Shown one piece after another: positions 5,900-64,000 of a DNA stretch of 64,000 nt. This DNA comes from Chara braunii. Lineage: Eukaryota > Plantae > Charophyceae. Both the position numbers and the translations under genes were made by a program. Numbering within the stretch: the first letter of the stretch is position 1; every line of letters begins with the position of its first letter. Under the pieces are notes generated by a model that saw only the letters and a program-made list of their open reading frames with translations, searched no databases and had not been told where the DNA came from. The stretch lies in contig BFEA01000003.1 of NCBI GenBank assembly GCA_003427395.1, forward strand, positions 4,476,054 to 4,540,053, given 5' to 3'.

Positions 5900-5939
<40 letters not shown>

Positions 5940-6181
5940 TCACAAACAGAACTGCCCGGTAAACCATAGGCAGAGAGAGAGAAGAGGACAACAAACGAGG
6001 GGTTGTGACAAACTGTTTCGTATATATATACATATATATATATATCGTCACAAACAGAACTATATATATATATATATATACATATATCGTCACAAACAGA
6101 ACTGTTCGGTAAACCGTAGGCAGAGAGAGAGAGCAGAGGACAACAAACGAGGGGTTGTGACAAACTGTTTCGTCGGAGTTT

Positions 6182-6237
<56 letters not shown>
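5900..6237 (-). repeat. (TA)n microsatellite containing nested 3' ends of the TA-family hammerhead element
   Basis: Segments 5938-6020, 6045-6060 and 6087-6188 are reverse complements of the 3' part of the 53520-53720 element. All share the same 3' end and have different 5' truncations. Confidence 0.8.
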
Positions 6238-9745: not shown

Positions 9746-10850
9746 CTAATTGTCGGACCAATTCGATCATTAAAAATCAATCAACATCAACCTTACACTA
9801 CCCTACTACCAAAAAAGGGGGCGCAACATGCAGCAACAAGGTAAGGTTTCAGAAGGAAATTTACAGCCTTCCTCAAACCAAGACAAAACACAATTCGTCA
9901 ATGATCTTCAAAGAAAAAGAAAAAAAAGAAAAAAAAAAAGGAAGAGGAATAATTATTAAAAGGGGAAGGAAGAAAGATGTAAAAAAAAACAAAAAGGGGG
10001 AGTGCAAAGAAAATGAAAAAGAACAAGGGGGGACAAGATTCTACGCTGAGCAATACGTGGATTGCTCAAACCCTCTATGCAGCGTCAGGAAGTAATACAC
10101 AGGAATACACAGGAATACACAGACTGCACGATGAACACGCAGTACAACACACTGTCAAAATGCCAAAGACGTTGTGTCATCAAAACCATCTTTAATTATT
10201 AAAACAACTCACGTTAACACGTGGTTGTTAACAGTGGTCACATGAAGCACAAGAAGATGAGTGATGATATGATGCAAAACCCCCGTTGTTAAAATGACAA
10301 CCGCACCGCTCACTCATCCCTTCGGTTCACCAACCAAGTCCCATCACCGCCACTCGGCGAAAGAGGAAATAGCTCATCAACAATAGTCAATTTATCTTCG
10401 ACTCGTTCGCCCCCTGTCTTGAAGTCATCCCATCGGTATCACACCAATCCAAAGACACATTAGTAGGCCCCTCGACGTTTCCGGAGCCCACAACAAAACA
10501 GTCGACTATCAAAACACCAGTTTGAAACTCAAAGAAAACAAGTCAAATTTGAATGTTACTACTCCGATCTCGCCCATTTGGTTATCGGTTCGAGACTCAA
10601 AGGAAAAAAGGGCAAATCAAGACAAAAAGTGTTGATGTGTCAGTCCCATCCGTAGGTTACCGGTTCGCAACCCTGCAAGTGTTGGTTCAAAGGGTACACC
10701 CTGGTCCCAATAAACTAGCACTACTCACAATCCTACAATGCTACAATTAAGTTCAACTGCTCCCTACCCCGCAACCGCATTACGAATCTAACCTAAAGCA
10801 CAACCAGAGCTAACCTACCTACTCGTTCAAGGCAATCTCAATCAATTACA

Positions 10851-13056: not shown

Positions 13057-13309
13057 TACCCGCCAACCATTTGCCCACGTGTTGCCCCTGTTGCAGAAGA
13101 GAACAATTTTTCCCTTTCTCTTAGTCAGTGCTCATAGTGCCTCCACAACCTTCACCGTACCAACACCCTTTCCCTCCTGCCGTTTCTCCACGATCTTCGT
13201 GCTATGCTTCTGGTAATCGCCTATACTTCTACGCTCATTATTTCGCTATTTCTTCCTTTCTTTCCTCCCTGGTCTACGCTTACTTTTCTTCGGCACCTTT
13301 CTCACCTTG

Positions 13310-13590
13310 AGTGCTCTGACATTAAGAGAAGGTGACCGGTGCCTAATCAAGGTACTTTCCACAACCCCCGGTTTCGAATGTTCTTCAATTGTAAACAAAG
13401 GTAGAGCGACATATCGGTGAGCACCTACCTTCCCAAACCGATTATACAACTTCCTCCTCCTTCTGCAATTCTTGCGACCCAAACAAAAGTGTTTCTGCCA
13501 CCTCGCCCATAGTCCCCTCTGTGTAAGACCAATGTAGTTTTTGTTATATCAGGAGGATATCAACAAATATACACAACTACGAGGTTCGGA
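13310..13590 (-). pseudogene. GIY-YIG endonuclease domain upstream of RT
   Basis: Manual translation: CVYLLISS*YNKNYIGLTQRGLWARWQKH...VVESTLIRHRSPSLN. The CVY, YIG, R, H, E and N catalytic pattern is present with one in-frame stop. Confidence 0.8.
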
Positions 13591-13875
13591 CAATTCAAAT
13601 CTTCCTTTCTCTACTTCATCATGCCAACAATCAACAAATTTCTCACCCCACTTTAGACGCCCTTCAAGAATCAATATGATAGTGGTTACTCGAAGGATTC
13701 CTTCGTCCTCTTTACATCTTCCATTCTTCCTTAGCCTTCTTTCTCACACTCGTTCAACTACACCCAGGTAGTCGTCGTGAGGACAAACACCTCAGTTAGA
13801 TTCCTCGTTGGAGTATGACACGTATGAGTCAGAGAAGTTCGTACTAGCACTCTCTTTGACTTCTTTAATCACCAC

Positions 13876-14930
13876 TCATGTGGTACTTCGGGCTCTTGTG
13901 CGTGGAGTCGACAATAGTGGAATATTAGCCGAATCATAGGCCGCGACCGATCTGCAAATAACCAGCCTCTTAATGACCAAATCTCTCTTGCCATAGGCCA
14001 CCTTCTCCCGTCGGCAAGCTTCCTTAAGCTCGTTGATGGTCAAAGAATCATAAAAGTCGTGACAGTCTTGTTCGAATCTCTCTTTCCCTCCACCGCCGCA
14101 GGATGCCGTAATATGCTTGAGTGATAAATCAATCTTCGATGGCATGTTGGTCGTCCCCGGATCAGTAGTACCAAGCTCACTCTTCAGTATCTCAATGTGT
14201 GCCTTGGATTCGTTCGTCAACTTAGTGTTCGACTTCCTTTTAGGGGTTACCATTGGCGAACTATTTCCAGCTGGTACGTCTGGACCCCGTTTCCACTTTT
14301 CGATTAGATTCATTTTTGCCGCCATCTTCCTCAGGGTCCGGAGTTCCTCGTCCTCCGCTTCTTCAGCAGACTCGAGGATCTTTGGAGCAATCAGACGCCG
14401 TAACCTCTCTTTTTCGGCCTCGATCGCGTCGTTACGCCCACTTGTTCTGGTTGTTCCCTTCTCTTTTCTCTCGTACCTTTCTCTTTCCTCCTCCCTATCC
14501 TTTCGCATCTCATTTCGTATGATTCACAGTAAACGAGTATCGCGTTCCTCCTCTAGCCTAAGTCGTTCTTTTTGTCCTAACAATCTCCGATTCTCCTTCA
14601 CCCGTTTTTTTTCTTCTTCTTTGCACATCTTCGCCTCTTCTGTTTCCCGTTCGACGTGAAGTCTCCGTTCTTCAACCATCTATAAAAAATACTCTCGCAT
14701 CAGTGAGTTCGTGTCGTCTCCCATGTCTCCACTCCCACTCCCACACTCGGTCGATCGACTTCTTCGAGGCATAGTATTCGTGCTCGGCACCACCGCTCTC
14801 CCCGTACGTGCCTGAACATTCGTCTGTACTAAAGGTACAAACGTACGTCTGAGTGTCTTTGCCTGCCAATATTCCGCGCAATCCTGAATGAAATGACCGC
14901 CTTCCCACACTTGTAACATCTTCGATTATC
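13876..14930 (-). pseudogene. upstream ORF of the PLE: CCHC zinc knuckle, coiled coil and SAP domain
   Basis: RRCYKCG followed by a frameshift into GHFIQDC gives CX2CX4HX4C near 14875-14920. An E/K/R-rich coil follows, then YDSLTINELKEACRREKVAYGKRDLVIKRL, a SAP-like motif. Confidence 0.65.
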
Positions 14931-15104
14931 GGGAGGTAATCCACCGCTCCCTCCTCCCTCCATACTCTCCTTGGATTCCGAACTTGCACTCATCTGAAAC
15001 TCCTAATGCCGAATTCCTCACCAAGAAACAACTTCACTGGTTCAACTTGCAAGCCGCCACCTCCGCTAGGTATGATTTCCTAGATGGTTACGACCCTGAA
15101 TGAT

Positions 15105-16458
15105 AGGAATACACAGACTGCATGATGAGCATGCAGTACAACACACTGCCAAAAGGCCAAAGACGTTGTGTCATCAAAACCATCTTTAATTCTTAAAACA
15201 GACTCACGTTAACACGTGGCTGTTAACAGTGGTCACATGAAGCACAAGAAGATGAGTGATGATATGATGTGAAACCCCCGTCGTCAAAATGACAACCGCA
15301 CCGCTCACTCAGCCCTTCGGTCCACCAACCAAGTCGCATCACCGCCATTCAGCGAAAGAGGAAATAACTCATCAACAATAGTCAATATATCTTTGACTCG
15401 TTCGCCCCCTGTCTTGATGTCATCTCGTCAGTATCACACCAATCCACATACACACTAGGCCCCCCGACGTTTCCGGAGCCCACAACAAAACAGTCGACTA
15501 TCAAAACACTAGTTCGAAACTCAAAGAAAACAAGTCAAAATTTGAATGCTACTACTTTGATCTCGCCCGTATGGTTATCGGTTCGAGACTCAAAGGAAAA
15601 CGGGGCAAATCAAGACAGAAAGTGTTGTTGTGTCGGTCTCATCCGTAGGTTACCGGTTCGCAACCCTGCAAGTGCTGGTTCATAGGGTACACCCTGGTCC
15701 CAATAAACTAACACTACGCATAATCCTTCAATGCTACGATCAGGTTTAACTGCTCCCTACCCCACAACCGCATTACGAATCTAACCTAAAGCACAACCTG
15801 CACTCACCTACCTACTCGTTCAAGGCAATCTCAATCAATTACAAATCCCAATATTGACCAAGAAGAAGAACATCGGTCAGTCAACAACATAGAGAGCAAT
15901 TTCCAAATCGATTTCCTTCCCTTGCTGAAGCTTCGAAGTGTCGTTCCCAACCATTGTTTGGGATAGTTACATCTACTGAGCTCAGTCCTCAACAGAATCA
16001 GAGTGTCCAATATCTCCATTCCCATATGCGAGTTCTGTTCAATCCGGTGCAATGCGCTAAATATGACCGCCATTTTTGTTTGCTTACCAGTCCATGACTC
16101 AAAGTCTTGGAAGGTACGGAACGGTAAAAACTCTCCACTTCGTAAGTGTTTTTCGTTTTTAAACGTCTGCACAGTGTCAAGAAATGAGAAATTCTGTCTT
16201 ATCGAAAGTTTACACCCCAAAAAATTCCATTCATCCTCGCCCTCGTCTGTCTGTTTCAATGCAAGTGTCTTATCATAGCACTTCTCAAATCGCTTCAACA
16301 ACTTTATTGCCTTCTCCTTGTCGCCTACCTTTCTTCGGTTAAATGTTGCAAGAACATACACATCGTCGACAAAACGCAACCCAGCGAAAGCTCTTTTTTG
16401 ACTTCCCAAAGTAATGATGAAGTCTCATTCATGCTTCACGCACATAAGGCATGCCAAT
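15105..16458 (-). repeat. pLTR (upstream partial tandem copy of the PLE 3' end, includes the GLRFVDD RT C-terminus)
   Basis: Direct repeat of 10111-11464; ORF 15831..16409. Confidence 0.85.
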
Positions 16459-17530
16459 ACAACGTCAACGGAAAAAAAAAAAAAAAAAAAAAAAAAAAAG
16501 GTGAACAGAACAGGGGAGAGGGTAAGGACGATATCAAGAAGGAAGAGGAGATGGAAGGATCGGCAACCAAAATATCCAATCAATTAGTATCTCAACTGCC
16601 CAACCAACTAATCCCCTCCATCACTAATACAAACAACCCATCATCCATTTAAAAAAAAAAAAAAAAGGCGGGGGAGGAGGAGGAAAAAAATGACGAACTT
16701 TAAGGTAGCAAGGAAGAAAAGGGAAGGGTAAGGGAATGGTCACGGATACAATTAAAAATTAAAAATTTTTAAAAAAAAAAAAAAAGTGGGGGAGGAAAAG
16801 AAAAAATCAGAAGGAGGGAGAAAAGGGAGGACGGAGGGTATAAAGAGACCAACGATTATGGAAGCAATCGAAGGTTGAAGCCACGTAGATCAAACTTCTC
16901 AACAAACTCAAGGGTGGCAACGATTTTTCTCATCATCGAAGATTCAAGAAAACATAGTCTAATCATAAGTATAAGGAAGGATCTTGCTGAATTTAAAGGT
17001 ATGTACTATCGATACCATCCTCTAAAACAAGCTGTAAAGATTAACATTATCCTCTTCATTCAACTATCTGACCGACCATATGCAAAGAAGGAGGCGGGTG
17101 GTAGTAAGTAGAGTTTACAAGTTGTTTGGATGGCGTTAACATAAATAAATCACTTGATCTTTAAAGATTATCTCATCAGCCTTTCTTTGCACTCAATCCC
17201 CCGAATTGCATTTCCTTTTCACCAACGATTGAATCAATCGGATAGTTAATCGGCTTCACCAAGAAGCGAGGGAAACAATGTGCTTCATCCTCTTCGATTT
17301 TTCACCAACCGATCAACTATCTGATCGACGACTACAATCACACTCTATTTACATCGATGTGCTCAACCTGCAGCATCTCAATCAGTTGTCAACATTCCAA
17401 AACCCCTCTTGTACTACTTATACCTAACCTTGTCATGCACTCAACCCCAGCATCTTCCAATGATTTCAATCTTTAGCATCAAGAATCTTACCAATCGCAA
17501 GGTAACAATAATATTTTGGAATCATACTTC

Positions 17531-47367: not shown

Positions 47368-47424
<57 letters not shown>

Positions 47425-47427
<3 letters not shown>

Positions 47428-47755
47428 GTCATGTGCGCTATAAATGACTTTAGTAAAGAATGGTGACTGTGCCAGACTCTTTCACCGGACTTTCACCGAC
47501 TCATCAGGAGTTTGAACCCCGACAGTCAGTCTCCCCAGGATGCATGTGACTGATGCATAAGGAAGGACTCACCACATCGCCCAGAGTTAGCGACACCCAT
47601 CCCTGAGAGAGAAAAGTGGTCGACTTTACTCACACCAACCAACCCTGCAATCCTGGCAGACTGTCGGTCCAAACTCCTGACAAGAATGGAAAGTAAGTCT
47701 GAGAAGCTCATCTGTCACAGCCCCACAACCCACTGTACGCTCCCACTCAGCCATA
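47425..47755 (-). mobile_element. ~330-nt non-coding hammerhead element (CA family) between (GT)n tracts
   Basis: Reverse complement is colinear with 50405-50708 and ends ATGACAA(CA)n. Contains the HHR at 47473-47527. Confidence 0.75.
47473..47527 (-). ncRNA. type III hammerhead ribozyme (degenerate)
   Basis: Minus strand reads GACTGTC-GGGGTTCAAACTC-CTGATGA-GTCGGTGAAAGTCCGGT-GAAA-GAGTCTG. Confidence 0.75.
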
Positions 47756-47846
47756 TTTCTGTGTTTGTGTGTGTGCGTGTGTTTGTGTGTGGGCGTGTGT
47801 GTTTGTGTGTGCGTGTGTGTGTGTGCGTGCGTGTGTGTGTGTGTTT

Positions 47847-47878
<32 letters not shown>

Positions 47879-47937
47879 CTGTGTGTGTGTGACTGACCGG
47901 TAATCTGTACACACCCACTCAGCCATATCAGCCATAT

Positions 47938-47988
47938 GTTTCACGGGACTTTCACCGACTCATCAGGAGTTTGAACCCCGACAGTCTG
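47938..47988 (-). ncRNA. type III hammerhead ribozyme, partial tandem copy, stem III truncated
   Basis: Minus strand reads CAGACTGTC-GGGGTTCAAACTC-CTGATGA-GTCGGTGAAAGTCCCGT-GAAACA. Confidence 0.7.
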
Positions 47989-48129
47989 CCCAGGATGCAT
48001 GTGACTGATGCATGTGACATGCATCAGCCATATGTGTGTATGTGTGGGACCACTAATTTCGTAGTAACTGGGATTTATTGTAACTGCTGGAATTTAAGAC
48101 CAGCATTCTCGGAGGTTCATTTCGTTGTC

Positions 48130-48199
<70 letters not shown>

Positions 48200-48200
48200 N

Positions 48201-48294
<94 letters not shown>

Positions 48295-49081
48295 TAACTG
48301 CTGGAATTTAAGACCAGCATTCTCGCAGGTTCATTTCGTTGTCTTTTTTTTTCTTTTTTTTTTGTCTTCATAGTTTGGAAGCTCGTGGTTGGTGCTCCAT
48401 GAACAGGGTTTTCTTCTTGAAGATCCTCCTCCTTATGGAGGACCCTATGTGTCATGACGGTTTCGAATGTCCTGGTGGGTGCCCCATCAACAGATTTTTC
48501 CTTCCTGAAGATCCTCCTCCAGCCTCCAGGTCCTGCTTGAGGAGGACCCTATGTATCATGATGATGGTTTGGCAGGTCCTGGTGGGTGGCTCCATCAACT
48601 GAATTCGTCCTCCTCCTCCCTGTAGGAGCCTCCGTGGATACACTAAACACAATGCACAATGTTTTCCCTAATGAAGTCACGGACAGGGTAGACGGCATCT
48701 GCGGAAGGGCATGTGGTGGTCCCAATGGACGGAGAGAAGTGAAGGAAAGTGAAAGAGGAATTTATTACGTTTCAATCGAATCTCTGACAAAGTAGATGAA
48801 AAAACTGCGCAAGGGTTACCTACACACGTGTATGTGGTGGTCCCCACTGTGAGAAAAAGATGAAGGAAAAGGAGAGGCAAAGTTAGTGAGGAGGTCACCT
48901 ATGGCCACGTCGAAAATGTATATACTACATTCCAAAACAAGTCTGAACCCCCACTAGTGGGACCTAAACCCCCGGTTCCTTGTAACACGCAATCCGGCGG
49001 CAATAGGTATATGTACTTGACCAGCTCCAAGTACGGCCATGGAATTCTGATGTGAATTCGTTATCACCAACACATATACTA

Positions 49082-49186
49082 CCGTCTTCCCCCGAACACA
49101 GCGCACCCTTACTTTGGCTGCACCTGACCTGAAATATAGCTTGTATACAATCGTTATCAGGTTGCGTTATCCTCGGGGGAAGACGG
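49082..49186. mobile_element. Tc1/mariner-type MITE
   Basis: Perfect TIR CCGTCTTCCCCCGA / TCGGGGGAAGACGG flanked by TA on both sides. Confidence 0.8.
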
Positions 49187-50404
49187 TAGCTTCAAGTATG
49201 GCCATGGAATTCTGATTTGCATTCATGGTAGCAATTGCTTCAAAGCATTTTTTCATTTTTTTAATAACGCGGCACTTTGCGAATATGTTGTGCTGTCGAT
49301 GGGGGGTGGGGGAAGTAGATGGGCGGCACAGCTACTGGCAAAATNNNNNNNNNNNNNNNNNNNNNNNNNNNNNNNNNNNNNNNNNNNNNNNNNNNNNNNN
49401 NNNNNNNNNNNNNNNNNNNNNNNNNNNNNNNNNNNNNNNNNNNNNNNNNNNNNNNNNNNNNNNNNNNNNNNNNNNNNNNNNNNNNNNNNNNNNNNNNNNN
49501 NNNNNNNNNNNNNNNNNNNNNNNNNNNNNNNNNNNNNNNNNNNNNNNNNNNNNNNNNNNNNNNNNNNNNNNNNNNNNNNNNNNNNNNNNNNNNNNNNNNN
49601 NNNNNNNNNNNNNNNNNNNNNNNNNNNNNNNNNNNNNNNNNNNNNGGTTCCACCCTGCTCCCTGATCACCGCTGATTAGGGCGGGGGGGCAACATGCATC
49701 CCCTTAATTGTGAGAGGAAGATATGCTTGCAGGGGTCCCCTGTTTAGGCTCAGGAGTAGTGGTCTGTAGATAGTGGGGGCACAATTGCCAGGATTCTGAA
49801 TGCATCTGCACGTGAAACATGTCCATGTGTATTTTCAGTATTGACCGGTGGCAAGTGGTTCAACTAGGGCTTATAACTGACCGTCGATGATGTACGTTTT
49901 TCGTTTTTTTGGCAGTTCGGAAAATAGTGGGCCTCCGACGTTTCAGCAGGTTGAAACAAAACGACGGCCGCGGATCAGATTTATCAACGGCAGCCGTTGT
50001 CGGGCCCGGCCTCCTAAAAGTTCGGGAATAGGCTAAAAAAAAACTTGTCGAAACGGCGAAGGTACTACAGGTTTAAGCTATATGTTCTCCTCTCAATTTC
50101 ACCTTTCAGTACGTACCACTACTCCTAAGCCGATACAGGTGACCCCTGCAAGCATAGCTCACCTGTTACAGTTAAGGGGATGCACGTTGCCCCCTGCCGT
50201 AATAGGTGGTTGTCGGGGAGTAGGGGGGGTGGGTGCCTGTGGGGGTGGTTGGCTAATGCCAAGAACGAGCGCATTTTGTCAGTAGCTGCTCCTCCCAACT
50301 ACTTCCCGCGCCCCCATCAAGTAACAGTCGTGTCTATGGCCAGCACTCTCCAACACACCTCACACAACCTACCCACCCACACACACACACACACAAGCAC
50401 ACAC

Positions 50405-50708
50405 ACAGTGGGTGTGTAGAGTGGGTTTTATGACTGTATCAGATCAGTTTCTCATACTTACTACCGATCTTGTCAAGGGTTTGGACCAGGTTCAGACCTG
50501 CTAGGTAAAGTGTTGTGAGTAAAGTGGGGACCACTTTTCTCTCTGAGGGGTATTGCTAATTGTGGGCAATGTGGTGAGTCCTTATCCATCGGTCAAATGA
50601 ATCCTGGGCAGACTGTCAGGGTTCCAACCTCCTGATGAGTCAGTGAAAGTCCGATGAAACAGTCTGGCACAGTCGTACTCTTTTTGAGTGTATAGTGAAT
50701 ATGACAAC
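50405..50708 (+). mobile_element. ~300-nt non-coding hammerhead element (CA family) between (CA)n tracts
   Basis: Homologous to 47425-47755, bordered by (CA)n on both sides, with an HHR at 50609-50666. Confidence 0.75.
50609..50666 (+). ncRNA. type III hammerhead ribozyme
   Basis: CAGACTGTC-AGGGTTCCAACCTC-CTGATGA-GTCAGTGAAAGTCCGAT-GAAA-CAGTCTG. Confidence 0.75.
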
Positions 50709-50721
50709 ACACACACACACA

Positions 50722-50759
<38 letters not shown>

Positions 50760-50768
50760 CAGACACAC

Positions 50769-50816
<48 letters not shown>

Positions 50817-50916
50817 CACACCTGTGATGGTCAAAGACCCTACCAATACCGAATGGGGGGAGCAAGCCAACTACCTCAGTTGGTTACTACCAAGAGTGCT
50901 GCAGGTGGTGCAGATG

Positions 50917-51300
50917 GCGTGTGGCGCGGTGGTCAGGGCACCTTTTGGAAATGCACATTGTGGTTTGGGGTTGCGGGTTCAAAACTCCGCATCCATGCAC
51001 ATGGACACTGGCGGACGTTTACATAACGTACACCCATCTGCAATCCCCCCTGGGTCGATGCAGGTAAGCTATTACAGACACTGCTTGCCCACCACCCAGG
51101 GGTCCTAGTCCATGGTTGTTATATGTTGGGTCCGGGCAATGAGGGTTTTCCCCAAGGTTCTTGGTCTGTGGGTTGTTCAGATGATTGTTCACTTGTCTTC
51201 TAGTCCACTATAGCGCACAAAATACACTAGTTTCCACAGTAGCTCAATGGGTTTGATGTGGGGGCTGCACGTTTGAGGTTGCGTGTTTGAATTCAATCAG
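50917..51300 (+). mobile_element. tRNA-derived SINE-like element, homolog of 25245-25630
   Basis: TGGCGCGGTGGTCAGGGC A box and GGGTTCAAAACTCC B box. Shares the body CTATTACAGACACTGC..CACCACCCAGGGG with 25245-25630. Confidence 0.6.
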
Positions 51301-52064
51301 GTATAATGGGATGCAGGCAGGAGTAAAAAACCCTAGGGCTCTGCTTAGGGTGTCGGTAGAGGTGGGATGCGAGGGATCCTGTCGCTTGCGGGGGATCAGG
51401 GCGTGAAGTTTTCAAAAAAAAAAAAAAAAAAGGACAGGATCTACAGCTGGCAACGGGAGGGGTTAGATAGGAGAGTCCTGAGAGAAGGTCCTGTTAGGAG
51501 GTAAGCTGACATAGAGCCTGCCCATAGGTTGAAGTAACAGGAGTGGTCGGGTGGCCTAGTGCGTATTGCTGATCTATGGCCCTTGTTGTCTGAGATAAGG
51601 GCCTCAGTAGGGGTCTTGTGCTGAGGGCTGCACCTTAGTAGGGATCTTGTGCTGAGGGCCCCCTTAGGCATCAAATAGGGTAGATAGTCTGCCTCCCGCG
51701 TTGAAGCACCAGTACATGGGCACCTGGGCCGTGGGTCTGACACCTCGAATTCTGGAGGTGCAAAACGAGGCCGCCGATAGAATTTATCAACGGCGGGCCC
51801 AGCGTTTCACGTTTCGGCCTTGTTTTCTTGTGGCGACAAGTTTCGGACTGCAAGGCTGGGGCCGTGTACTTGTGGTTTAACAAAATAGCGCACAACCAAC
51901 AACGATTACCGCAAAAAACAACAGAACAAGTAGTCATAACAACAGTGTGCACAGTGAACAACCTGACAACAAGACCAGTTACTGTAGTAACAAATAACTG
52001 TGCAGTGTGTACACAACTGTAGGAACAAGGAATAGGTCCACCTATGAGACTTGTAGAGAATGTC

Positions 52065-52970
52065 CATAGGCTCCATACCTAGCGCCTGAAGTACCCATGC
52101 GACATAGGCTCCATACCTAGCGCCTGAAGTATCCATGCGACATAGGCTCCATACCTAGCNNNNNNNNNNNNNNNNNNNNNNNNNNNNNNNNNNNNNNNNN
52201 NNNNNNNNNNNNNNNNNNNNNNNNNNNNNNNNNNNNNNNNNNNNNNNNNNNNNNNNNNNNNNNNNNNNNNNNNNNNNNNNNNNNNNNNNNNNNNNNNNNN
52301 NNNNNNNNNNNNNNNNNNNNNNNNNNNNNNNNNNNNNNNNNNNNNNNNNNNNNNNNNNNNNNNNNNNNNNNNNNNNNNNNNNNNNNNNNNNNNNNNNNNN
52401 NNNNNNNNNNNNNNNNNNNNNNNNNNNNNNNNNNNNNNNNNNNNNNNNNNNNNNNNNNNNNNNNNNNNNNNNNNNNNNNNNNNNNNNNNNNNNNNNNNNN
52501 NNNNNNNNNNNNNNNNNNNNNNNNNNNNNNNNNNNNNNNNNNNNNNNNNNNNNNNNNNNNNNNNNNNNNNNNNNNNNNNNNNNNNNNNNNNNNNNNNNNN
52601 NNNNNNNNNNNNNNNNNNNNNNNNNNNNNNNNNNNNNNNNNNNNNNNNNNNNNNNNNNNNNNNNNNNNNNNNNNNNNNNNNNNNNNNNNNNNNNNNNNNN
52701 NNNNNNNNNNNNNNNNNNNNNNNNNNNNNNNNNNNNNNNNNNNNNNNNNNNNNNNNNNNNNNNNNNNNNNNNNNNNNNNNNNNNNNNNNNNNNNNNNNNN
52801 NNNNNNNNNNNNNNNNNNNNNNNNNNNNNNNNNNNNNNNNNNNNNNNNNNNNNNNNNNNNNNNNNNNNNATACCTAGCACCTGAAGTACCCATGCGACAT
52901 AGGCTCCATACCTAGCGCCTGAAGTACCCATGCGACATAGGCTCCATACCTAGCGCCTGAAGTACCCATG
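52065..52970. repeat. 38-bp tandem minisatellite spanning an N gap
   Basis: Unit CATAGGCTCCATACCTAGCGCCTGAAGTACCCATGCGA is seen on both sides of the gap. Confidence 0.85.
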
Positions 52971-53304
52971 CAAAGGGGCTCGTACGACTATATGTTTCGA
53001 TTAGGGCTGAGTAGGGTAAGTGGGACTCTGCTTAGCCCTGCCCATGCGACGGGGCTCGTACTGAGTAGGGTAAGTGGGACTCTGCTTAGCCCTCGTAGCC
53101 GCAACTGCCATCCGGTCAAGGTCGCCCCTGAGCGGGTTGATAGTCCTGAGAGGTAGACACTGAGTTAGGATCGTAGTAGGGGTGCGCCGGGGAGAAATTA
53201 CGAGAGTGGAAGGTTGGGAGGGAGTCTCAGGGGGCGTCTATCGATTGTCTGACTGTCGTATGTTCAGAATCCGACCACTACAACAACCTGGGCTTTTTGC
53301 TGCA

Positions 53305-53378
53305 GGTGGGCAGTGGGGATTAAACCCACGACGTCCTGAATGCCACTTGGGTGCCTTAACCAACTAAAGCTAGGCCGC
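53305..53378 (-). mobile_element. tRNA-like Pol III head (SINE head or tRNA pseudogene)
   Basis: Minus strand GCCTAGCTTTAGTTGGTTAAGGCAC...CGTGGGTTTAATCCCCAC has A and B box-like motifs at tRNA spacing. Confidence 0.55.
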
Positions 53379-53586
53379 TTGCTCCACTACTGTCATTTTG
53401 ACTGGATGAAATGCTCTGATCTTAAAATATATAACCGTAGGCAGAGAGGGAGAAGAGGACAACAAACGAGGGGCTGTGGCAAACTGTTTCGTCGGAGTTT
53501 ATATGTATATATGGGTGAGTGATAGTCTACTTTGATTTTGGTTAAGGTAGATTATCATTTACAGTGTAATCAGTGAGGGGATTCTG

Positions 53587-53644
53587 CAGACTGTTGAGGG
53601 TTCAGCCTCCTGATGAGTCGGTGAAACTCCGATGAAACAGTTTG
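53587..53644 (+). ncRNA. type III hammerhead ribozyme in TA-family element (53520-53720)
   Basis: CAGACTGTT-GAGG GTTCAG CCTC-CTGATGA-GTCGG TGAAACT CCGAT-GAAA-CAGTTTG. Confidence 0.8.
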
Positions 53645-53841
53645 TCACATCCCCTCGTTTGTTGTCCTTTTCTCTCTCTCTGCCTACGGTTTACCAGGCA
53701 GTTCTATTTGTGACGATATATATATCATATATCTCTGTTTGTTACGATATATATATATATATATATCGTCATATATATATATCGATATATATCGTCATAT
53801 ATATCGTCATATATATATATATCGTCACAAACAGATATATA

Positions 53842-54918
53842 CAGGGTTGCCGGCATTCGGGACGGGCCGAACGCCCGAACCCGAACGCCCGAACGTNNNN
53901 NNNNNNNNNNNNNNNNNNNNNNNNNNNNNNNNNNNNNNNNNNNNNNNNNNNNNNNNNNNNNNNNNNNNNNNNNNNNNNNNNNNNNNNNNNNNNNNNNNNN
54001 NNNNNNNNNNNNNNNNNNNNNNNNNNNNNNNNNNNNNNNNNNNNNNNNNNNNNNNNNNNNNNNNNNNNNNNNNNNNNNNNNNNNNNNNNNNNNNNNNNNN
54101 NNNNNNNNNNNNNNNNNNNNNNNNNNNNNNNNNNNNNNNNNNNNNNNNNNNNNNNNNNNNNNNNNNNNNNNNNNNNNNNNNNNNNNNNNNNNNNNNNNNN
54201 NNNNNNNNNNNNNNNNNNNNNNNNNNNNNNNNNNNNNNNNNNNNNNNNNNNNNNNNNNNNNNNNNNNNNNNNNNNNNNNNNNNNNNNNNNNNNNNNNNNN
54301 AAAATTCTGAAAAAAAACTATGTCATGCAGAAGAATAAACTAAACAACATTTGCCTCACCAGTACATCCAAATGCATTACCAAATTTGAAATAAAAATCA
54401 AATACGAAAAATAAATAATATTAATGAAAATAAGAAAAAATAAAACGGGAATGAAATTATTGCGTGGGCCAGCAAGTTTTTGACACCGCCGTCTTTGGCA
54501 ATTTTTCTTTTTTTTTTGGCTTTGTCAAATGCCAGGAAATTTTATACACATGTATCTTACATAATAGAGAACCTACAATAAAGTTTGAAAAAATAATAAT
54601 TTTGTTCAGGCCCCGAAATAAAGGGAAAACAAAAAGTGAAAAGAGAAAAAAAACAAATTAGTAAGTGGGAAAGCAAGTTTTGACACCACCCTCTTTGCCG
54701 ATTTTTTGTTATGGTTTGGCTCCACAGAATGACTTCAACATTGATAGACAGGTAGCTTACATAATAGAGAACTCACACAAAAAAAATCAGAAACAAATAA
54801 TAATTTTTAGGTACCAAAATAATGTTTTGCGGGGTCCGAACCCCCGTACGGGAACCCGAACGCCCGAACGTTCGGGGGTCAGCTTAGGGGCCTCCGTACG
54901 TTCGGCCTGGCAACTCTG
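53842..54918. mobile_element. non-autonomous hAT-type DNA transposon
   Basis: TIRs CAGGGTTGCC / GGCAACTCTG and an 8-bp TSD GATATATA at 53834-53841 and 54919-54926. Subterminal CCGAAC repeats and an internal N gap are present. Confidence 0.8.
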
Positions 54919-55157
54919 GATATATATATGAGTCGGTGAAACTCTGACGAAACAGTTTGTCACAGCCCCTCGTTTGTTGTCCTTTTCTCTCTCTCTGCCT
55001 ACGGTTTACCAGGCAGTTCTGTTTGTGATGATATATATACATATATCTCTGCCTACGGTTTACCGGGCAGTTCTGTTTGTGACGATATATATATATAAAA
55101 TCTCATCTCTTCCTGGATAGGTGCCGTAGAAAAGAAGATTTGGGTCACACTCGTACA

Positions 55158-55440
55158 AGGCCCTCGAAATCACAGAATCACAAAATCAGCGGCCGGATTG
55201 AGTCCCTGTGAAATGAGGACTCGGTCTGGCCGCTCATTTTGCGATTCTGCAATTTTGAGGGCCTAGTGTGAGTACAAGGGTGTTGCTCCACTACTGGGCA
55301 AATGTGCAAAATGAGGGCCCAGTGTGAGTACAGTCTGAGGGCGTTGCTCCAGTACTGGGCAAATGTGCAAAATGAGGGCCTAGTGTGCGAGTACAGTCGA
55401 AGGGCGTTGCTCCACTAGTCAGCAAATGTGCAAAATGAGA
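55158..55440. repeat. 48-bp-arm imperfect palindrome followed by three ~60-bp tandem units
   Basis: AGGCCCTCGAAATCAC...GAGTCC pairs with GGACTC...TTTGAGGGCCT. The tandem unit is GGGCCTAGTGTGAGTACA...GTTGCTCCA.TACTGGGCAAATGTGCAAAATGA. Confidence 0.75.
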
Positions 55441-56699
55441 ATGAATCCTCTGCAGGAGCACGGAAAGGTACACCGCCATCCGAAAGTGGGAACAGCGGAG
55501 GAGGTGTCTGCTCTTATTAGCACCTCCCCCACACCCATCGTCGATGTTTCTTAACAAAAAAAAAGAAAAAAAAAAGGAAAAAAAAAAGAAGGATATACTG
55601 CCATATTTTGTATCTTTTGTGCATGTAATGAGTAGTGGAGCGAGGCCCTTACATGTGTCCATTGGTTCCTTTTTTTTCTTTTCCAAGAACCAGCCCTAAC
55701 CGCGCCAGTTGTCAGACCATCTGTGATTGAAGAAATATCCAGCATCAATTCTACTTGCTGCCTGGCTTTTGAGGAGTAGAATTGGTGAGGTCATTGACAA
55801 TGAATCGGCTTCTTGGGGGGGTCCCCGATAGGGCTGGTGATGACGAGGGGGGGGGAGGNNNNNNNNNNNNNNNNNNNNNNNNNNNNNNNNNNNNNNNNNN
55901 NNNNNNNNNNNNNNNNNNNNNNNNNNNNNNNNNNNNNNNNNNNNNNNNNNNNNNNNNNNNNNNNNNNNNNNNNNNNNNNNNNNNNNNNNNNNNNNNNNNN
56001 NNNNNNNNNNNNNNNNNNNNNNNNNNNNNNNNNNNNNNNNNNNNNNNNNNNNNNNNNNNNNNNNNNNNNNNNNNNNNNNNNNNNNNNNNNNNNNNNNNNN
56101 NNNNNNNNNNNNNNNNNNNNNNNNNNNNNNNNNNNNNNNNNNNNNNNNNNNNNNNNNNNNNNNNNNNNNNNNNNNNNNNNNNNNNNNNNNNNNNNNNNNN
56201 NNNNNNNNNNNNNNNNNNNNNNNNNNNNNNNNNGTGGAGAAGTAGCGGGAGGGTTAAGGGGTGGGAGGTTGTTGGGCAACGGTGAAGTCCTCGTCGTGGA
56301 TTGTCAGGGGGTGGGTGAGGGGGTGGGGGGGGGGGGGGGATGGTGGGGTAGTCGGAGGCACGGGGGTCGTAAGGACCGGGATGGGGGGGTCGAATTCGTG
56401 CCCCTTCAGTCTCCACCAGAGGATTGAAAGGGGGCCTCGTGGATTGTCAGGGGGTGGGTGATTGGGTGGCGCGGTGGTAGGGGATGGTGGGGTAGTCGTG
56501 GGCAAGGCGGTCGAGTTGGAATAAGGAGTGAGATGGGGGGGTCGAATTCGTGTCCCTTCAGTCTCCACCAGAAGATTGAAAGGGGGCCTATCCTGATCGG
56601 GGCTTGCTGCTGGACAGGGCGGCTGGTCCCCTTGCATGTGCACTGTGATTGGCTCTCCCAGCACTGGCTGGAGGAAGGTCACCTGTGGTCGCCATCGCC

Positions 56700-58330
56700 A
56701 CTGGTGCTCAGCTTGCCACCACGGTTTCCAGAGGAGCTACTGTGAGTTCGGCCAGTTTTCGGTCTGGGTGAAGACATGCAAGCTTAAAGGCTTTTCTTTG
56801 TTCCTCTCTCCGGACCTGGTCTGTTGTTGTTGTGAAGGTCTCTTTTAGCGGGCACCAAGCGTTTTGGGTGTTTGATCTTATTGTCTATGATATGCTATTT
56901 TGCTTGGATGTAGCCAACGTCGCGCTCTTTATATTTGTGAGAGCAGCGAGTGCGTCGAACGTCGCGCTCTTTATATTCCTGAGAGCAGCGAGTGCGTCAA
57001 GCTGTTACGAGGACTTCCAGTCGTGTGTAACGAGGATAGATTAAGCTGGAAGGGTGTGCACATGGTTGGGTTCTTGGTGTGTTGGCCAAGCAGGAGTATG
57101 GCTAGGTCCCATGGCAGGGCTACCTCAGTGAGGTGGTGCCATGTTGCGCTTCACCACTGCCAGTTTTGTCTTGCTAGTGGACAGAACAGCAGGCAGCGTT
57201 CCATGTCTACAATCCGTGGTGGAGATTATGAGCCGCCGTAGGAGCAGAGGGGTCTACAATCTGTGGTGGAGATGATGAGCCGCAGGAGGAGCAGAGGGGT
57301 GACAAGCACTCCTCGCTGTTCCGATCGTGATCTGGACACCAGCCATTCCGGCGTAGGCAAGCATTGATAAATAAATCTGCCATTGGAGCATTCACTGGGA
57401 TGTGGGCCCTAGGCATGCATATGGAGACCAGTGAAAGTGTTGTAAGTCCATCTCTTTCGATTCAGAATCTCGCAGCCATCGGCTTTTTATAATGTCGGTG
57501 GTAGTGATGGGCTTATGGATCTTCCTATAGCAATCTTTGACATAGAACTTCCACGGTGGGAGTGGTTTGGCCCCACCTCATTGCCACTCCGCCGGTTCAG
57601 AGGGGAGCAATCGTATTGCGATCGATGGTTCATAGGCCCACCATAAATTTGTATCGTCCCTTGCCACCCTGATTCGGATGAACTCGTCTAGTTCTAGCTG
57701 GGAGAACCTCGCTCTGGGCAGCTCTGGCTCGTATGCTTCTAATTCTACCTCGGATCCTGTGTCCTTGCAAACCCGATAGACTAACATGGGGAGGTAAAGT
57801 GAGTCCGTCGTGATCACCCACTCCCTCTCAAGGATATGGGGTCCTCATTTGAGGACTTGTACCCAAGCCATGGGGATGACCTCATCTTAGAGTCGTTGTA
57901 GTTTTTTGTGTAGGTTGTGGATGTTCTTTAGTTGGTGCCAAAGTTGGACTGTCGTTTTCCATCGGCCTGCCTGGTCATCCCACAAATCTCGCAGAGCGAA
58001 GACCCTCTTTTTGACCCATGAGAGCCAATGAGAGTCTTGCTTGATTGAAAAGGGCTCTCCACGTGAGTTGAAAGACTTGGGGGTGTTCCCGAAGCAGGGC
58101 TGCCTCAAGATCTCATGCCAGCGGGTGGGGGGGCGGATCTTTTCGGGACCAATCTCTCTTCACGGAGCTAGGAGGGAGGTCCACAGGGGCCCGTTGGCCA
58201 AATCGCCCTTTGCTGCTGCCGTGGGGGAATCCGAACTCCGTATCTTGGGGTAGTGAGGATAGACCAGGCCGGGTTTGTGAGCCAGGTTAAGGGGTAGACT
58301 GGTTTGTCCCCCGGTGTTTGTGGAGCGAGG
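56700..58330 (-). mobile_element. L1/Tx1-clade LINE ORF2 3' remnant
   Basis: RQPCFGN..GEPF..W...LRDLWD..WK, plus a degenerate C-terminal zf-RVT LCSSCG...CLLFCPLARQNWQW across frames. Confidence 0.65.
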
Positions 58331-61300
58331 CAGGTCAGTTGAATGTGGGCCAGGGGAGCTCAGGAATGGGAATCCGTGCGACCGCCAGATTCGCTCTATG
58401 ATTCATGCTGCTAGGCCCTCCATAACAATGACAAGGAAAAGAGGGCCCATCGGTTCGTGTAGCGAACGTTTTTTTTTTCCCGTTTTGTGTCCAGGGTTCG
58501 AACTCGTGTTATCTGTTTGTGACCTTTTTTTTTTAAGCCCAGGGTGTTGTAGAGGCCAAGGACCAGACCCACTGTGATTGCTGGTAGCGGCAGCCAATGG
58601 TTGTCCTGACAGGATAGGCCACCTACCCCACCCATCCCCACGTTAATACTCCCAGCGCTCCCCCTGTCCCTACTATCGTACCTCAGTGTGAACGTTTACA
58701 TGTGTGTCAACAACCACGAGGCAGATATCATTCACATTTTTGCTCAACTTTCGAAGCAAGGTCCCCAGGACAGAAACAGAAAAGGATGAGGTTGGCCTAT
58801 TAGCACAATCGGTACACCAACCAACTTTTGGAATACAGACCTGAGTTCGAGATCCAATTGAACCAGATGAGTAAAATAACTTTGAATTAACCTCGGGCCA
58901 GTCGGCTCGAAGTCTCAAAGATGATATCTCATGTCTGTCACTCTTTTCGAAAGAGGGGAAAAAAAAAGAAGAAGAAGAAAGGGACGAGGTACCAACGAGC
59001 CTAGCTCAGTAGGGACACCCACAAACTCTTGAAATACCAACCCGAGTTTGCATCAAATGCAATCAGATGAACAGAAGGAAAAAAAAGAAAAACTGAATTA
59101 CTTGAAGCTGATCAGTTCAATGATATTATCTCAAGGCCTTTGCTTCTGAAATAGGAAATCAGAAAACAAAGGGACGATTCAGGGTGCGCCATGAAATTGG
59201 AGTATGTCGGGCGATGTGGACGACGGGGCAAGGCGATCGTCATCAACATAATAGATAATTAGTCCACACCCTTATCATCATTACATCTCTATAGGTGTTT
59301 AGTCATTTCTATAGTGATTTTCACCATCTGTAGTATCACTATCATCAACACTATCATCCTCACAGCTACCATCTGTAGGTGAAGTTGATCGCCACCACTA
59401 TCTTTAGGCTACCGATTCACTCAAATAGTCATCTATAACATTTCAATCATTATCACTACCATCATCAATATTAAATATCAATCTGAAAACCTTTTAGTCT
59501 CAGGGTACCGTTTTCGGCTACCCAATTATCCAATAGTCATAAATATTTACACCCTGATTAGCTGTATCTTGATTACCAACATCTAGATTACCTATATCTC
59601 GACTACCTATATCTCGATCACCTATTTCTTGATTACTTACTTATTGATTACGACTATTTGTAGCAGAAATTTCAGACATAACGTTTTCATGCTGGGATTG
59701 TTTAGCAATTTCGCCACTGGATTTTGCCTTGCATGTTCCCCCTTTGTTTCATTTTTTTCATGAGCTTTTGCAGACGCTGTAGTGGGGATAGGACTTCGGA
59801 GGTTATGGCTGGAACTTTGGTAGGCAGGGGGGTTTTGAGACTCCAGGGTAGATCTGTCTGGCCTAAGTTAGGGGACAAGCCAGGGGAAGGACGGTAGGAC
59901 TTTCAGCCTGGGCTCCGCCTGGCCTTGGGTAAGCTAGGGGAAGGAGAGATAGGGCTGGCCAGTTGTGGGTATAGACTACTAGTTAGCTGTCCCCGAAAAA
60001 TTAACCCTGAGGTCTGTTATAGGGGAGCCTTATTCTACAAGGGTGTTGCATGGTGGGAGGCAATAGCCCTATAGGGAGTAGGGCAGATTGGGGATTGTCT
60101 GAGTCTGGGGTCGGGGTTGGAGAGTTGGTCGCCTTCAACCCCAGCGGGGGCAGATAGGGACAAGGGGTGGCCAAAGGCAGCCTCTAGGAGGGGATTGGTT
60201 GTCGTTGCGGAGGTGGTGGTGGGAGGGGAGGGGATCTGTTTTATGTTGGGGCCGAGGGATTTTCCTCGGTGGAGGCAGCATGAGACAAGGTATAGTGGGT
60301 AGGGATTGGTTTGAGCTGTGACCAATGNNNNNNNNNNNNNNNNNNNNNNNNNNNNNNNNNNNNNNNNNNNNNNNNNNNNNNNNNNNNNNNNNNNNNNNNN
60401 NNNNNNNNNNNNNNNNNNNNNNNNNNNNNNNNNNNNNNNNNNNNNNNNNNNNNNNNNNNNNNNNNNNNNNNNNNNNNNNNNNNNNNNNNNNNNNNNNNNN
60501 NNNNNNNNNNNNNNNNNNNNNNNNNNNNNNNNNNNNNNNNNNNNNNNNNNNNNNNNNNNNNNNNNNNNNNNNNNNNNNNNNNNNNNNNNNNNNNNNNNNN
60601 NNNNNNNNNNNNNNNNNNNNNNNNNNNNNNNNNNNNNNNNNNNNNNNNNNNNNNNNNNNNNNNNNNNNNNNNNNNNNNNNNNNNNNNNNNNNNNNNNNNN
60701 NNNNNNNNNNNNNNNNNNNNNNNNNNNNNNNNNNNNNNNNNNNNNNNNNNNNNNNNNNNNNNNNNNNNNNNNNNNNNNNNNNNNNNNNNNNNNNNNNNNN
60801 NNNNNNNNNNNNNNNNNNNNNNNNNNNNNNNNNNNNNNNNNNNNNNNNNNNNNNNNNNNNNNNNNNNNNNNNNNNNNNNNNNNNNNNNNNNNNNNNNNNN
60901 NNNNNNNNNNNNNNNNNNNNNNNNNNNNNNNNNNNNNNNNNNNNNNNNNNNNNNNNNNNNNNNNNNNNNNNNNNNNNNNNNNNNNNNNNNNNNNNNNNNN
61001 NNNNNNNNNNNNNNNNNNNNNNNNNNNNNNNNNNNNNNNNNNNNNNNNNNNNNNNNNNNNNNNNNNNNNNNNNNNNNNNNNNNNNNNNNNNNNNNNNNNN
61101 NNNNNNNNNNNNNNNNNNNNNNNNNNNNNNNNAGCTGGATGGAACTACCATCTTCCCCCGAACACAGTGGCCCTGATTATGGCTTTTTTTTTTTTTTTTT
61201 TTGGATGATGTATGTATACGAGGCTATAACGAGCTAATTTTCCGGTCCTATGCATTCATGATGAGGGTGTGTTGTGTTTGGGGGTGGAAAGACGGTATCC

Positions 61301-61409
61301 CATCCTGGACTGACTTGTTGCCAATGAGGGAGTTGCTCATTTTGGCTCGACAAATTAAGGGTTTCTCCCCTTTCTTTTTGTAATTCATTTTTTTTTTAAA
61401 TCTATTTTT

Positions 61410-61533
61410 AAAGTGGGATCATTTTTTCTGGATTTATGCATGTCATCCTTGTCACAGGGGCCATGCTGATTACTATTTAGCAATTATACCCTTTTCTGTA
61501 TCATTCTGATTTTAGATGGATCCCACTAAGGAC
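61410..61533 (-). pseudogene. U6: diverged U6 snRNA copy with 20-nt insertion
   Basis: Minus strand GTCCTTAGTGGGATCCATCTAAAATCAGAATGATACAGAAAAG-[20 nt]-ATCAGCATGGCCCCTGTGACAAGGATGACATGCATAAATCC is colinear with plant U6. Confidence 0.75.
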
Positions 61534-62182
61534 AGGGGTCTCAGCCCTTTTGGAAGGGGCTACCAAGGGGGTGCCTTTTTTTTGTCCGGGTAAACGCTAA
61601 AGCCAGGGGTCCACTCAAGTTGGCAAGAGACATAAAAAGGCTTTTCTGAAGGTAATGGTACGTAGACAACACCTAGAATCAGGTGCAGATCATGCACTTG
61701 CAGACAGAGAAGGTCAAGTACATCATGGACTTGCACAGCGAGAGAGAAGGGTGTTCTCTCCCTTGCTAACCTGATCAGGCTATTTACATGTATGTGAATT
61801 GCGTCTCCGTGTACTATATTTTAGAAGAGGGCCCATGTTAGGCCTGTCTTCACTGCATGTGTGGGTGCGTGTTGCGGGTAAGAAGGGGGAGGGGGAAAGG
61901 GAGGGGGAGGGGGAGGGGGGTGGGTAGGGCTGGTTTGAGGACGCCATGTATGATGTGATTCATCCCCGCAGCTGGATGAAGATTCTCCCAAGTGTGACAC
62001 GTAATGATGCCAGAGTCAGCCAGACCTATTCTATCTTGTGCTGCAAGAAAAGCTCTGTTGCTCCCGACCAATAGATGGAGTCTCCCCAAGAACAGCTTGA
62101 TGTGTCTGCTCCTACTAGAGCACCTGCCTCCGGGGCTGTTACAAAAAAAAGAAGGAAAAAAAAAGCTCTTTCTTACATATTT

Positions 62183-62235
62183 CTATTCTGGGGGATATCG
62201 TGCTTCCATGACAACCCTTCTCCTTTCTGTGTTTA

Positions 62236-62281
<46 letters not shown>

Positions 62282-62700
62282 GGTGTTTACGTAGGGCGTT
62301 GCTGCGAGCATGCACAAGTAAATATGTGATGACGACCTCAGCAATTGGATTTTTGGATTCTGGGGGATATCGTGCTTCCACAACCACCCCATTCTCTGCT
62401 GTGCAAAGACTAGAGCTGGCTGTACAATGCGAGGTACAAGCTTCTCCTTTCTGCGTTTACATTTCTTTCTTTCCTTCTTTCTTTCTTTTTTTTTTTCCTT
62501 TCGTTTTTAGCGTTGCCAGCACGCACAAGTTTGTTTTTTTCCCTTTCGTTTTTAGCGTTTACGTAGCGCGCTTCTGCCAGCACGCACAAGTAAACATGTG
62601 ATGACGACCTCAACGATTGGACTTTTGTATTCGGGGGGATATCGTGCTCCCGCAACCACCCCATTCTTCTCTGCTGTGCAATGACCGGAGGTGGCTGTGT
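62183..62700. repeat. ~270-bp imperfect tandem duplication with poly(T) tracts
   Basis: GCACAAGTAAA.ATGTGATGACGACCTCA...GGGGGATATCGTGCT occurs at ~62310-62400 and ~62585-62680. Confidence 0.75.
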
Positions 62701-63263
62701 GCAATTGTTCGCTACATATGCAGAACATGGTCCTCCTGAAGGGTTGTGTTTCCCTACACTTATAGAAATCGCTATTCGGCGCGCAGCGTTTGGCCCGCCC
62801 GAGGCCTACCGGCCGACGGCCCGGATTTCCGCGCGATCTTAAGACTTTAAGACTTTAAGACTAAGATCGCGCGGCGATCCAGGCCGTCCGCTTTGACAAA
62901 CTTCCTGGATCGCTGCGCGATCTAAGAGTCTTAAGATTCAGATCGCGCGGAAATCCGCCGGCCCGGTACCAGTTGGCCAACGGCCCAGATTAGCCAGGCG
63001 TGGGAAAAAACCGGTTCCAGGGGGGCTGGTCTCCTATAGGGCGCAGCGGTTCGGCCCCCGCGCATGTCTTCGGCGGCGCACGGAGCCTGTGTATTGCGAA
63101 CGAGACAGCACTCACTCACACGGCCGCCCGCCCGCCGGCCCGCCTGCCCGCGTGAACAAGCACATGCACAGACTCACGCATATGCACACATGCACGCGCA
63201 CACACGCACATGCGCTCACGGACGGACACGCACACACGCACGTGCAAGCAAATGCATCATGGG

Positions 63264-63320
63264 CAGACTGTTGGGGTTCAACCTCCTGATGAGTTGGTGA
63301 AAGTCCAACGAAACAGTCTG
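63264..63320 (+). ncRNA. type III hammerhead ribozyme, best-preserved copy (GUU site)
   Basis: CAGACTGTT-GGGG TTCAA CCTC-CTGATGA-GTTGG TGAAAGT CCAAC-GAAA-CAGTCTG. All three stems pair, and the copy is flanked by CA-rich repeats. Confidence 0.85.
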
Positions 63321-63380
63321 GCAGAGTCGTGCTTTTTTGGGGGGGTTCACACAAACGCACGAACACAGGTGGGTGGGTGT

Positions 63381-63457
<77 letters not shown>

Positions 63458-63964: not shown

Positions 63965-64000
<36 letters not shown>

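Follow-up and report, generated by a model that had tools for sequence, protein, structure and literature searches.

Probable SINE-like retroelement families with type III hammerhead motifs at (CA)n and (TA)n microsatellites of Chara braunii

Introduction

The hammerhead ribozymes (HHRs) of retroelements are currently sorted by type: type I HHRs are assigned to Penelope-like elements (PLEs) and the tandem retrozymes of animals, and type III HHRs to the plant retrozymes with long terminal repeats (LTRs). Plant LTR retrozymes carry two LTRs of ~350 bp, each with an HHR, together with a primer-binding site (PBS) and a polypurine tract (PPT); their target-site duplications measure 4 bp, and the enzymes they use are presumed to be those of Ty3-gypsy elements (Cervera et al., 2016, PMC4918200). 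Metazoan non-LTR retrozymes contain type I HHRs, are arranged in head-to-tail arrays and give rise to circular RNA molecules (Cervera and de la Pena, 2020, PMC7229834); they have been proposed to be non-autonomous PLE derivatives (bioRxiv 10.64898/2026.07.22.740005). In the charophyte Chara braunii, PLEs of the Chlamys group target (CA)n, and a 'canonical 3'-HHR' has been reported in two PLE subclades (Craig et al., 2021, PMC8557442). Here we analyse a 64,000-nucleotide stretch of C. braunii DNA (the window; assembly GCA_003427395.1, contig BFEA01000003.1, positions 4,476,054 to 4,540,053 of the forward strand) in which short units with type III HHR motifs lie within (CA)n and (TA)n microsatellites. 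These units probably belong to two families of short non-coding retroelements that resemble short interspersed elements (SINEs) and are very abundant, the copies in the window being decayed, truncated and stacked.

Results

Five type III hammerhead motifs in the window

Five type III HHRs had been placed in the window from the sequence alone (hereafter the original prediction), and all five were recovered at their sites (Table 1). RF00008, the Rfam model of the type III hammerhead, has a gathering score of 48.5 bits and gave zero matches in the window at that threshold; four of the motifs surfaced at E-value thresholds only, and the fifth was detected by R1, a covariance model that was built from the other four and whose training set therefore did not contain it. 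The type III order, which runs stem III, H17 cut, stem I hairpin, CUGAUGA, stem II hairpin, GAAA and stem III, and both core boxes are present in every motif, but a single copy (63265-63319) is intact in its core and all three stems, with U at position 17. The motif at 53588 likewise has U17, with stem II closed by a G-U pair; stems I and II are mismatched in the motif at 50610, stems I and III are broken in the degenerate motif at 47474, and stem III of the motif at 47931 is without its 3' strand. Most differences between HHR copies are CpG-type transitions, in agreement with the decay that had been proposed, and transitions also predominate in the read data. Covariation among 11 HHR copies was not above that of shuffles because the copies are too alike, and the case for the HHRs therefore rests on the match to the consensus. 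No HHR was found in positions 1-46100 of the window, and a scan of JGI (Joint Genome Institute) metagenome contigs for the HHR core returned 0 matches. None of the assembly gaps touches a unit, the nearest (53897) lying 181 nt past a unit end, and the estimated gap lengths affect only the spacing between units.

The units form two families with fixed 3' ends

Both of the 3'-end motifs noted earlier, ATGACAA(CA)n for one family and GTGACGA(TA)n for the other, were confirmed and define two families, tied to (CA)n and (TA)n respectively. In both, the 3' end is TGACRA followed by the family's own microsatellite; the HHR modules are ~87% identical and the flanks unrelated. The units are non-coding and without LTRs, as the original prediction held: they contain no open reading frame (ORF), and a search for direct repeats found no LTR-like repeats flanking any unit. 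A tRNA-Met PBS was absent from the units and their vicinity; three weak matches at other places of the window are at chance level. Target-site duplications are unreadable because the units sit inside microsatellites.

The CA family has one HHR, 90 nt from the fixed 3' end. Unit A is flanked on both sides by (CA)n on its sense strand and contains, at 47651-47701, an arm complementary to the HHR ('anti-HHR'). Unit C is ~75% identical to unit A and starts 11 nt inside its 5' end, and the upstream anti-HHR arms of the two have derived changes in common. The identity, near-equal 5' ends and common arm changes together indicate that a discrete unit of ~300-330 nt was propagated. In the rearranged copy B, GAAACA runs straight into a repeated TATGGCTGA, the motif with which the unit begins at its 5' end. 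Cleavage of the old copy E is predicted after 63272.

In the TA family the HHR lies 121 nt from the fixed 3' end, and the family end reads GTGAYGA(TA)n. Copies in the window and in the assembly are 92-97% identical. In 273 kb of C. braunii DNA we counted 15 TA-type 3' ends, belonging to copies as short as 6 nt, all at (TA)n and often stacked. The copy at 53512..53716, with predicted cleavage after 53595, is truncated, as other family members extend upstream of 53512 (consensus of read loose ends, agreement 0.92). A long copy in locus L004 (L numbers denote fetched loci) starts 230 nt upstream of its HHR, at a repeat rich in TA, and the full length of the TA family is therefore at least 355 nt. 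Two copies give good support to a discrete full length in the CA family, and one copy gives weak support in the TA family.

The supposed TA unit at 53433-53716 proved to be two copies. Its minus-strand part, 53433..53500, resembles the 5' arm of the adjoining TA copy, and we considered whether the whole might be one rod-like monomer. This was rejected: reads with loose ends show family members running past both inner boundaries, so that 53433-53716 consists of two truncated copies placed head to head.

Absence of an ORF, a common 3' end, variable 5' truncation and high copy number, all seen in the units, are the features of SINE-like elements placed by target-primed reverse transcription, and the strong 5' truncation and fixed 3' end of TA copies are the pattern which that process leaves behind. 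Summed DNA contig depth within the unit exceeds that of unique flanks by a factor of thousands, a ratio that is not a copy number.

A separate element with inverted termini (CAGGGTTGCCGG...) also occurs in (TA)n, at window positions 53835-54918 (spanning the gap 53897-54300), L001:15883 and L004:14320-14398. It adjoins TA-family copies at several loci and is likely a TA-targeting DNA transposon or miniature inverted-repeat transposable element.

Table 1. Positions of hammerhead motifs, family copies and Penelope-like features (window coordinates unless a locus is given).
Feature	Position	Strand	Remarks
HHR of CA unit A	47474-47528	-	RF00008 24.9 bits, E 0.18
HHR of CA copy B (fifth motif)	47931-47990	-	R1 only, 59.9 bits
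HHR of CA unit C	50610-50665	+	RF00008 35.9 bits, E 1.4e-4
HHR of TA copy	53588-53643	+	RF00008 40.4 bits, E 7e-6
HHR of CA copy E	63265-63319	+	RF00008 46.7 bits, E 1.2e-7
CA unit A, full-length-like	47426..47757	-	332 nt; starts ATATGGCTGAGTGGG, ends ATGACAA
CA copy B, rearranged	47891..48032	-	HHR 47937-47990; ends in (CA)n
CA unit C	50407..50707	+	301 nt; ends ATGACAA(CA)n; (CA)n both sides
CA copy E, old, 5'-truncated	63249..63338	+	in decayed (CA)n; best-preserved HHR
TA copy, 5'-truncated	53512..53716	+	HHR 53588-53643; tail GTGACGA(TA)n
TA fragment	53433..53500	-	5'-truncated in loop 2; last ~25 nt gone; loose ends 53433, 53500
TA 3'-end micro-copies, stacked	53733..53834	both	6-15 nt; inside (TA)n
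Two stacked 5'-truncated TA copies	54928..55085	+	54928-55031 (starts inside CUGAUGAG), 55047-55085
Three stacked 5'-truncated TA copies	5937..6187	-	6187-6087, 6060-6045, 6020-5937; one (TA)n
Chlamys-type PLE, partial then full copy (pLTR layout)	10100..16583	-	GIY-YIG Pfam E 0.006
Type I-layout motif	L012:9569-9599, 15071-15101; L007:10079-10107, 14839-14867; L006:8633-8661		in pLTRs

Penelope-like elements and the search for a parent

It is possible that the units are no separate family but 5'-truncated 3' tails, that is fragments of pseudo-LTRs (pLTRs), of a described HHR-bearing PLE of the Chlamys-2_cBra or PLE-X type. The HHRs of two C. braunii PLE subclades and the (CA)n targeting are already on record (Craig et al., 2021, PMC8557442), most copies that we saw are tail-only fragments, and the TA family extends upstream of its window copy; all three points favour such an origin. 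PLEs with GIY-YIG and reverse transcriptase (RT) domains are indeed resident in the genome, as the original prediction supposed, and one occupies ~10100-16583 of the window, with a frameshifted zf-CCHC, GIY-YIG and, after these, an RT interrupted by stops. The scans detected no HHR in this PLE, and its 3' end, GCAGTCTGTGTATTCCT, lies outside any microsatellite; it is of the class considered as a candidate source of the mobilising enzyme and has no link to the units. All 11 homologues of the window PLE were Chara braunii proteins, and a profile search for Chlamys PLEs gave 375 cluster representatives at E<1e-30, of which the 10 checked were all from C. braunii.

We sampled 12 zf-CCHC/GIY-YIG/RT loci, all of the Chlamys type, PLE-X and Josephin-type families falling outside the sample. 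R1 never matched an element end in these loci and found only scattered TA-family copies, and neither the PLEs of the 12 loci nor the window PLE has an HHR or a tail in common with the short units. The autonomous PLEs with the same 3' ends that had been anticipated were thus not encountered among the 12. Three of the 12 PLEs (L012, L007 and L006) do carry another HHR-like motif in their pLTRs, unrelated in sequence and of type I layout, in the order stem I strand, CUGAUGA or CUGAGGA, stem II, GAAAC, a tiny palindromic helix III, GUC cut and stem I strand. The elements that bear it are young, with pLTRs 97-98% identical. These motifs are identified by inspection and by the identity of the paired pLTRs; Rfam Hammerhead_1 scored that of L007 weakly (12.7 bits) and did not report that of L012. 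An HHR of this PLE style has been described previously (Cervera and de la Pena, 2014, PMC4209133).

As no PLE end in the 12 loci has the type III HHR and the pLTRs of three bear a different motif, the units do not represent truncated pLTRs of that clade; the objection that the original prediction had named against itself, an origin from truncated pLTRs of a described element, did not hold for this one PLE clade. The common 5' end of units A and C, bordered by (CA)n, and the start of the long L004 copy at a TA-rich repeat that no ORF precedes also speak against a PLE tail, and we consider this origin unlikely. The young PLE in L012 ends TTGAC(TC)n(CA)n. This is similar to the 3' ends of the short families, TGACRA plus a microsatellite, and lends weak support to a related integration machinery.

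U6-like sequences were also seen in this material. The one at 61411-61539 (-) of the window resembles U6 snRNA but contains an insertion of 20 nt (41.5 bits; gathering 44) and is probably a pseudogene; L011:581-685 is a strong U6 match and L001:5626-5724 is degenerate and U6-like, each some kb from a PLE.

Copy 5' ends, transcription and folding

The 5' ends of TA copies are not spread evenly around the predicted cleavage site: 11 of the 15 copies begin 5-36 nt past it and none in the 88 nt before it. The best-supported loose ends in reads fall at 53597, 53601 and 53604, with (TA)n directly before each. In two oligo-dT RNA runs, the element sense strand exceeded the antisense strand 2-5 fold at both of the oppositely oriented TA copies. 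Sense RNA depth was ~270 just before the predicted cut, then ~960 and ~2100 after it; summed DNA depth over the same region was steady at 1.6-1.9 million. The copy 5' ends and the step in RNA depth suggest that the HHR sets the 5' end of the template, which may often be the 3' cleavage product, slightly trimmed on joining.

ARAGORN found no tRNA in 46000-64000, and runs of T5-T6 within the units argue against full-length Pol III transcripts. Another high-copy transcribed repeat lies at 53308-53361; it has a tRNA-like look, although ARAGORN calls no tRNA there, and its summed DNA depth reaches ~1000 times that of its immediate flanks.

Most of unit A (47425-47745, minus strand) is predicted to fold into a long rod-like hairpin that buries the HHR (z -3.75), and the long TA copy of L004 into a hairpin that hides it (z about -7 against mononucleotide shuffles). 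For L004:8430-8490, a better HHR copy, the minimum free energy (MFE) fold is the canonical three-way junction; the canonical fold of the copy E HHR has -18.3 kcal/mol, compared with -20.6 kcal/mol for its MFE fold.

The original prediction called the units retrozymes. True retrozymes would have the RNA between two HHRs of stacked copies excised and circularised by tRNA ligase, with the circle as intermediate. The type III HHR, as in plant retrozymes, the rod-like folds of the unit A stretch and the L004 copy, and the presence of two same-strand HHRs ~460 nt apart (47474 and 47937) are what such a cycle would predict. There is, however, one HHR per unit, the copies are dispersed, most stacked copies are without the 5' half of the ribozyme, and neither LTRs nor a PBS lie near the units; the fixed 3' end and graded 5' truncation suit a linear template. 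RNA read joints that 'go back' were considered as evidence of circles and rejected, the same joints being found in DNA contigs, where they reflect stacked copies; a circle that had closed at the HHR site would give reads like those of linear DNA and is therefore invisible to this approach. The name, in the sense of excision and circularisation, is not supported, and we regard such a cycle as very unlikely for these units.

A proposed mechanism

We propose that RT/endonuclease supplied in trans would nick a (CA)n or (TA)n tract, that the nicked strand would pair with the element RNA in its 3'-terminal microsatellite, and that the enzyme would then copy the RNA into the site by target-primed reverse transcription. 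Because the type III HHR lies almost wholly 3' of its cut, self-cleavage would free a tail module of 90-120 nt with a defined 5' end. Copies made from this module, lacking the 5' strand of stem III, would be unable to cut again. The upstream anti-HHR arm would fold full-length RNA into the long hairpin, which could keep the ribozyme inactive and so allow the propagation of complete master copies. A Chlamys-type PLE is the likeliest, though unproven, supplier of the enzyme; which enzyme acts, that the HHR cuts in vivo, and what the cut and the hairpin do are what we infer from the patterns above.

A long interspersed element (LINE) with a microsatellite 3' end might instead move SINE-like elements of this kind. 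Some LINE/SINE pairs likewise combine a fixed 3' end with extensive 5' truncation and a tail of microsatellite sequence, and no sampled PLE has the tail of the units. Neither the window nor the loci showed a LINE RT, however, and the RTs found there were of Ty3/gypsy and PLE type only, and Chlamys PLEs are very numerous in the genome and reported to target (CA)n. We therefore think it very unlikely that a LINE rather than a PLE moves the units.

Several observations weigh against the interpretation as two SINE-like families whose HHR acts in this manner. No autonomous element with the same HHR or tail was found in ~320 kb, and the 5' end of a full-length TA element is known from the L004 copy alone. 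The majority base 17 of the TA family is U, giving GUU, a weaker cleavage site than GUC, and the rod-like fold is lost in the unit C stretch 50409-50707 (z -0.1). There is no sharp pile-up of RNA read starts at the cleavage site, and antisense RNA depth also rises 2-3 fold there, so that part of the sense step is an effect of mapping or copy structure. Copy 5' ends could also cluster in the HHR through stalling of the enzyme on the folded ribozyme. Taken with the fixed 3' ends, graded truncation and abundance of the units, these points leave decayed copies of two SINE-like families as the probable interpretation. Among known kinds, the units come closest in behaviour to SINE-type partners of a retroelement that targets microsatellites, with a ribozyme of plant style.

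Whether the families constitute an undescribed class is a narrower question. A microsatellite-homing SINE-like 'retrozyme' of a streptophyte alga, in which an arm-gated type III HHR of the plant and viroid style would yield a template of ~100 nt from the tail for PLE-type integration, is a tentative proposal that we put forward with some doubt. A literature search found no paper describing these short type III units; novelty is limited by the HHRs of some C. braunii Chlamys elements and the (CA)n targeting already published (PMC8557442).

Other features of the window

An uninterrupted ORF of 541 aa at 41603-43228 (+) encodes a dihydrolipoyl dehydrogenase (TIGR01350, E 2e-173). It has an N-terminal extension of ~77 aa, begins directly after an assembly gap and may represent either a retrogene or a gene without introns. 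The stretch 29500-36500 (-) contains a pol of Ty3/gypsy type (RVT_1 and RNase H, E 6e-40) and ORFs next to it, and a weak tyrosine-recombinase-like ORF (PF00589, E 3e-4) lies at 22864-23490 (-). Two 91%-identical units at 48074-48154 and 48288-48368 have long T runs at their ends; on the opposite strand they read as poly(A)-tailed retroposon ends.

Discussion

The CA and TA families probably number tens of thousands of copies and probably also start or lengthen tracts of (CA)n and (TA)n, and they matter for annotation and assembly of the Chara genome. Chara stands near the base of the land-plant lineage and holds both a type I-layout motif, in the pLTRs of PLEs, and far commoner short elements of type III, which appear to integrate in the manner of PLEs. 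This combination bears on the origin of plant retrozyme ribozymes and on HHRs as parasites of PLEs, a suggestion of Craig et al. The pattern of copy 5' ends offers a testable role for the HHR, that of defining the 5' end of the template.

A comparable logic is known from the HDV (hepatitis delta virus)-like ribozymes that R2 and other non-LTR retrotransposons carry at their 5' end, which free the element RNA from a co-transcript lying upstream and define the 5' end of the template. The Chara HHR resembles these in the role proposed and in lying almost wholly 3' of the cut; it differs in ribozyme class and in its position near the 3' end of the unit, from which a tail-only template would result.

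With the Chlamys and Naiad PLEs of C. braunii the units have in common a bias to (CA)n and (TA)n, 5' truncation, and stacked and inverted partial copies, and with some of their subclades an HHR near the 3' end, all in the same genome (PMC8557442). Those PLEs are, in contrast to the Chara units, coding elements of 3-8 kb with pLTRs (PMC8557442), and the Chlamys-type copies that we fetched have no sequence in common with the type III units.

Metazoan retrozymes are similar in being short (about 170-400 nt), non-coding units with one HHR, a compact fold and very high copy number; the lack of LTRs, PBS and PPT is given as a common trait, and both are suspected of reliance on PLE enzymes. Whereas the metazoan elements are tandem repeats of 150-450 bp with type I HHRs, the Chara units have type III HHRs, occur singly or in irregular stacks, and lie within microsatellites, their 3' end fixed and their 5' end truncated. 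Plant LTR retrozymes are like the Chara units in their type III HHR, in belonging to the green lineage and in being non-coding and transcribed; they are unlike them in their LTRs and PBS, neither of which was found on searching the Chara units, and in the single HHR of each unit. If the tentative class is real, microsatellite-homing elements of this kind would link the PLE-derived, type I retrozymes of animals with the type III LTR retrozymes of plants, and would do so in a genome whose autonomous PLEs bear hammerhead motifs of type I layout.

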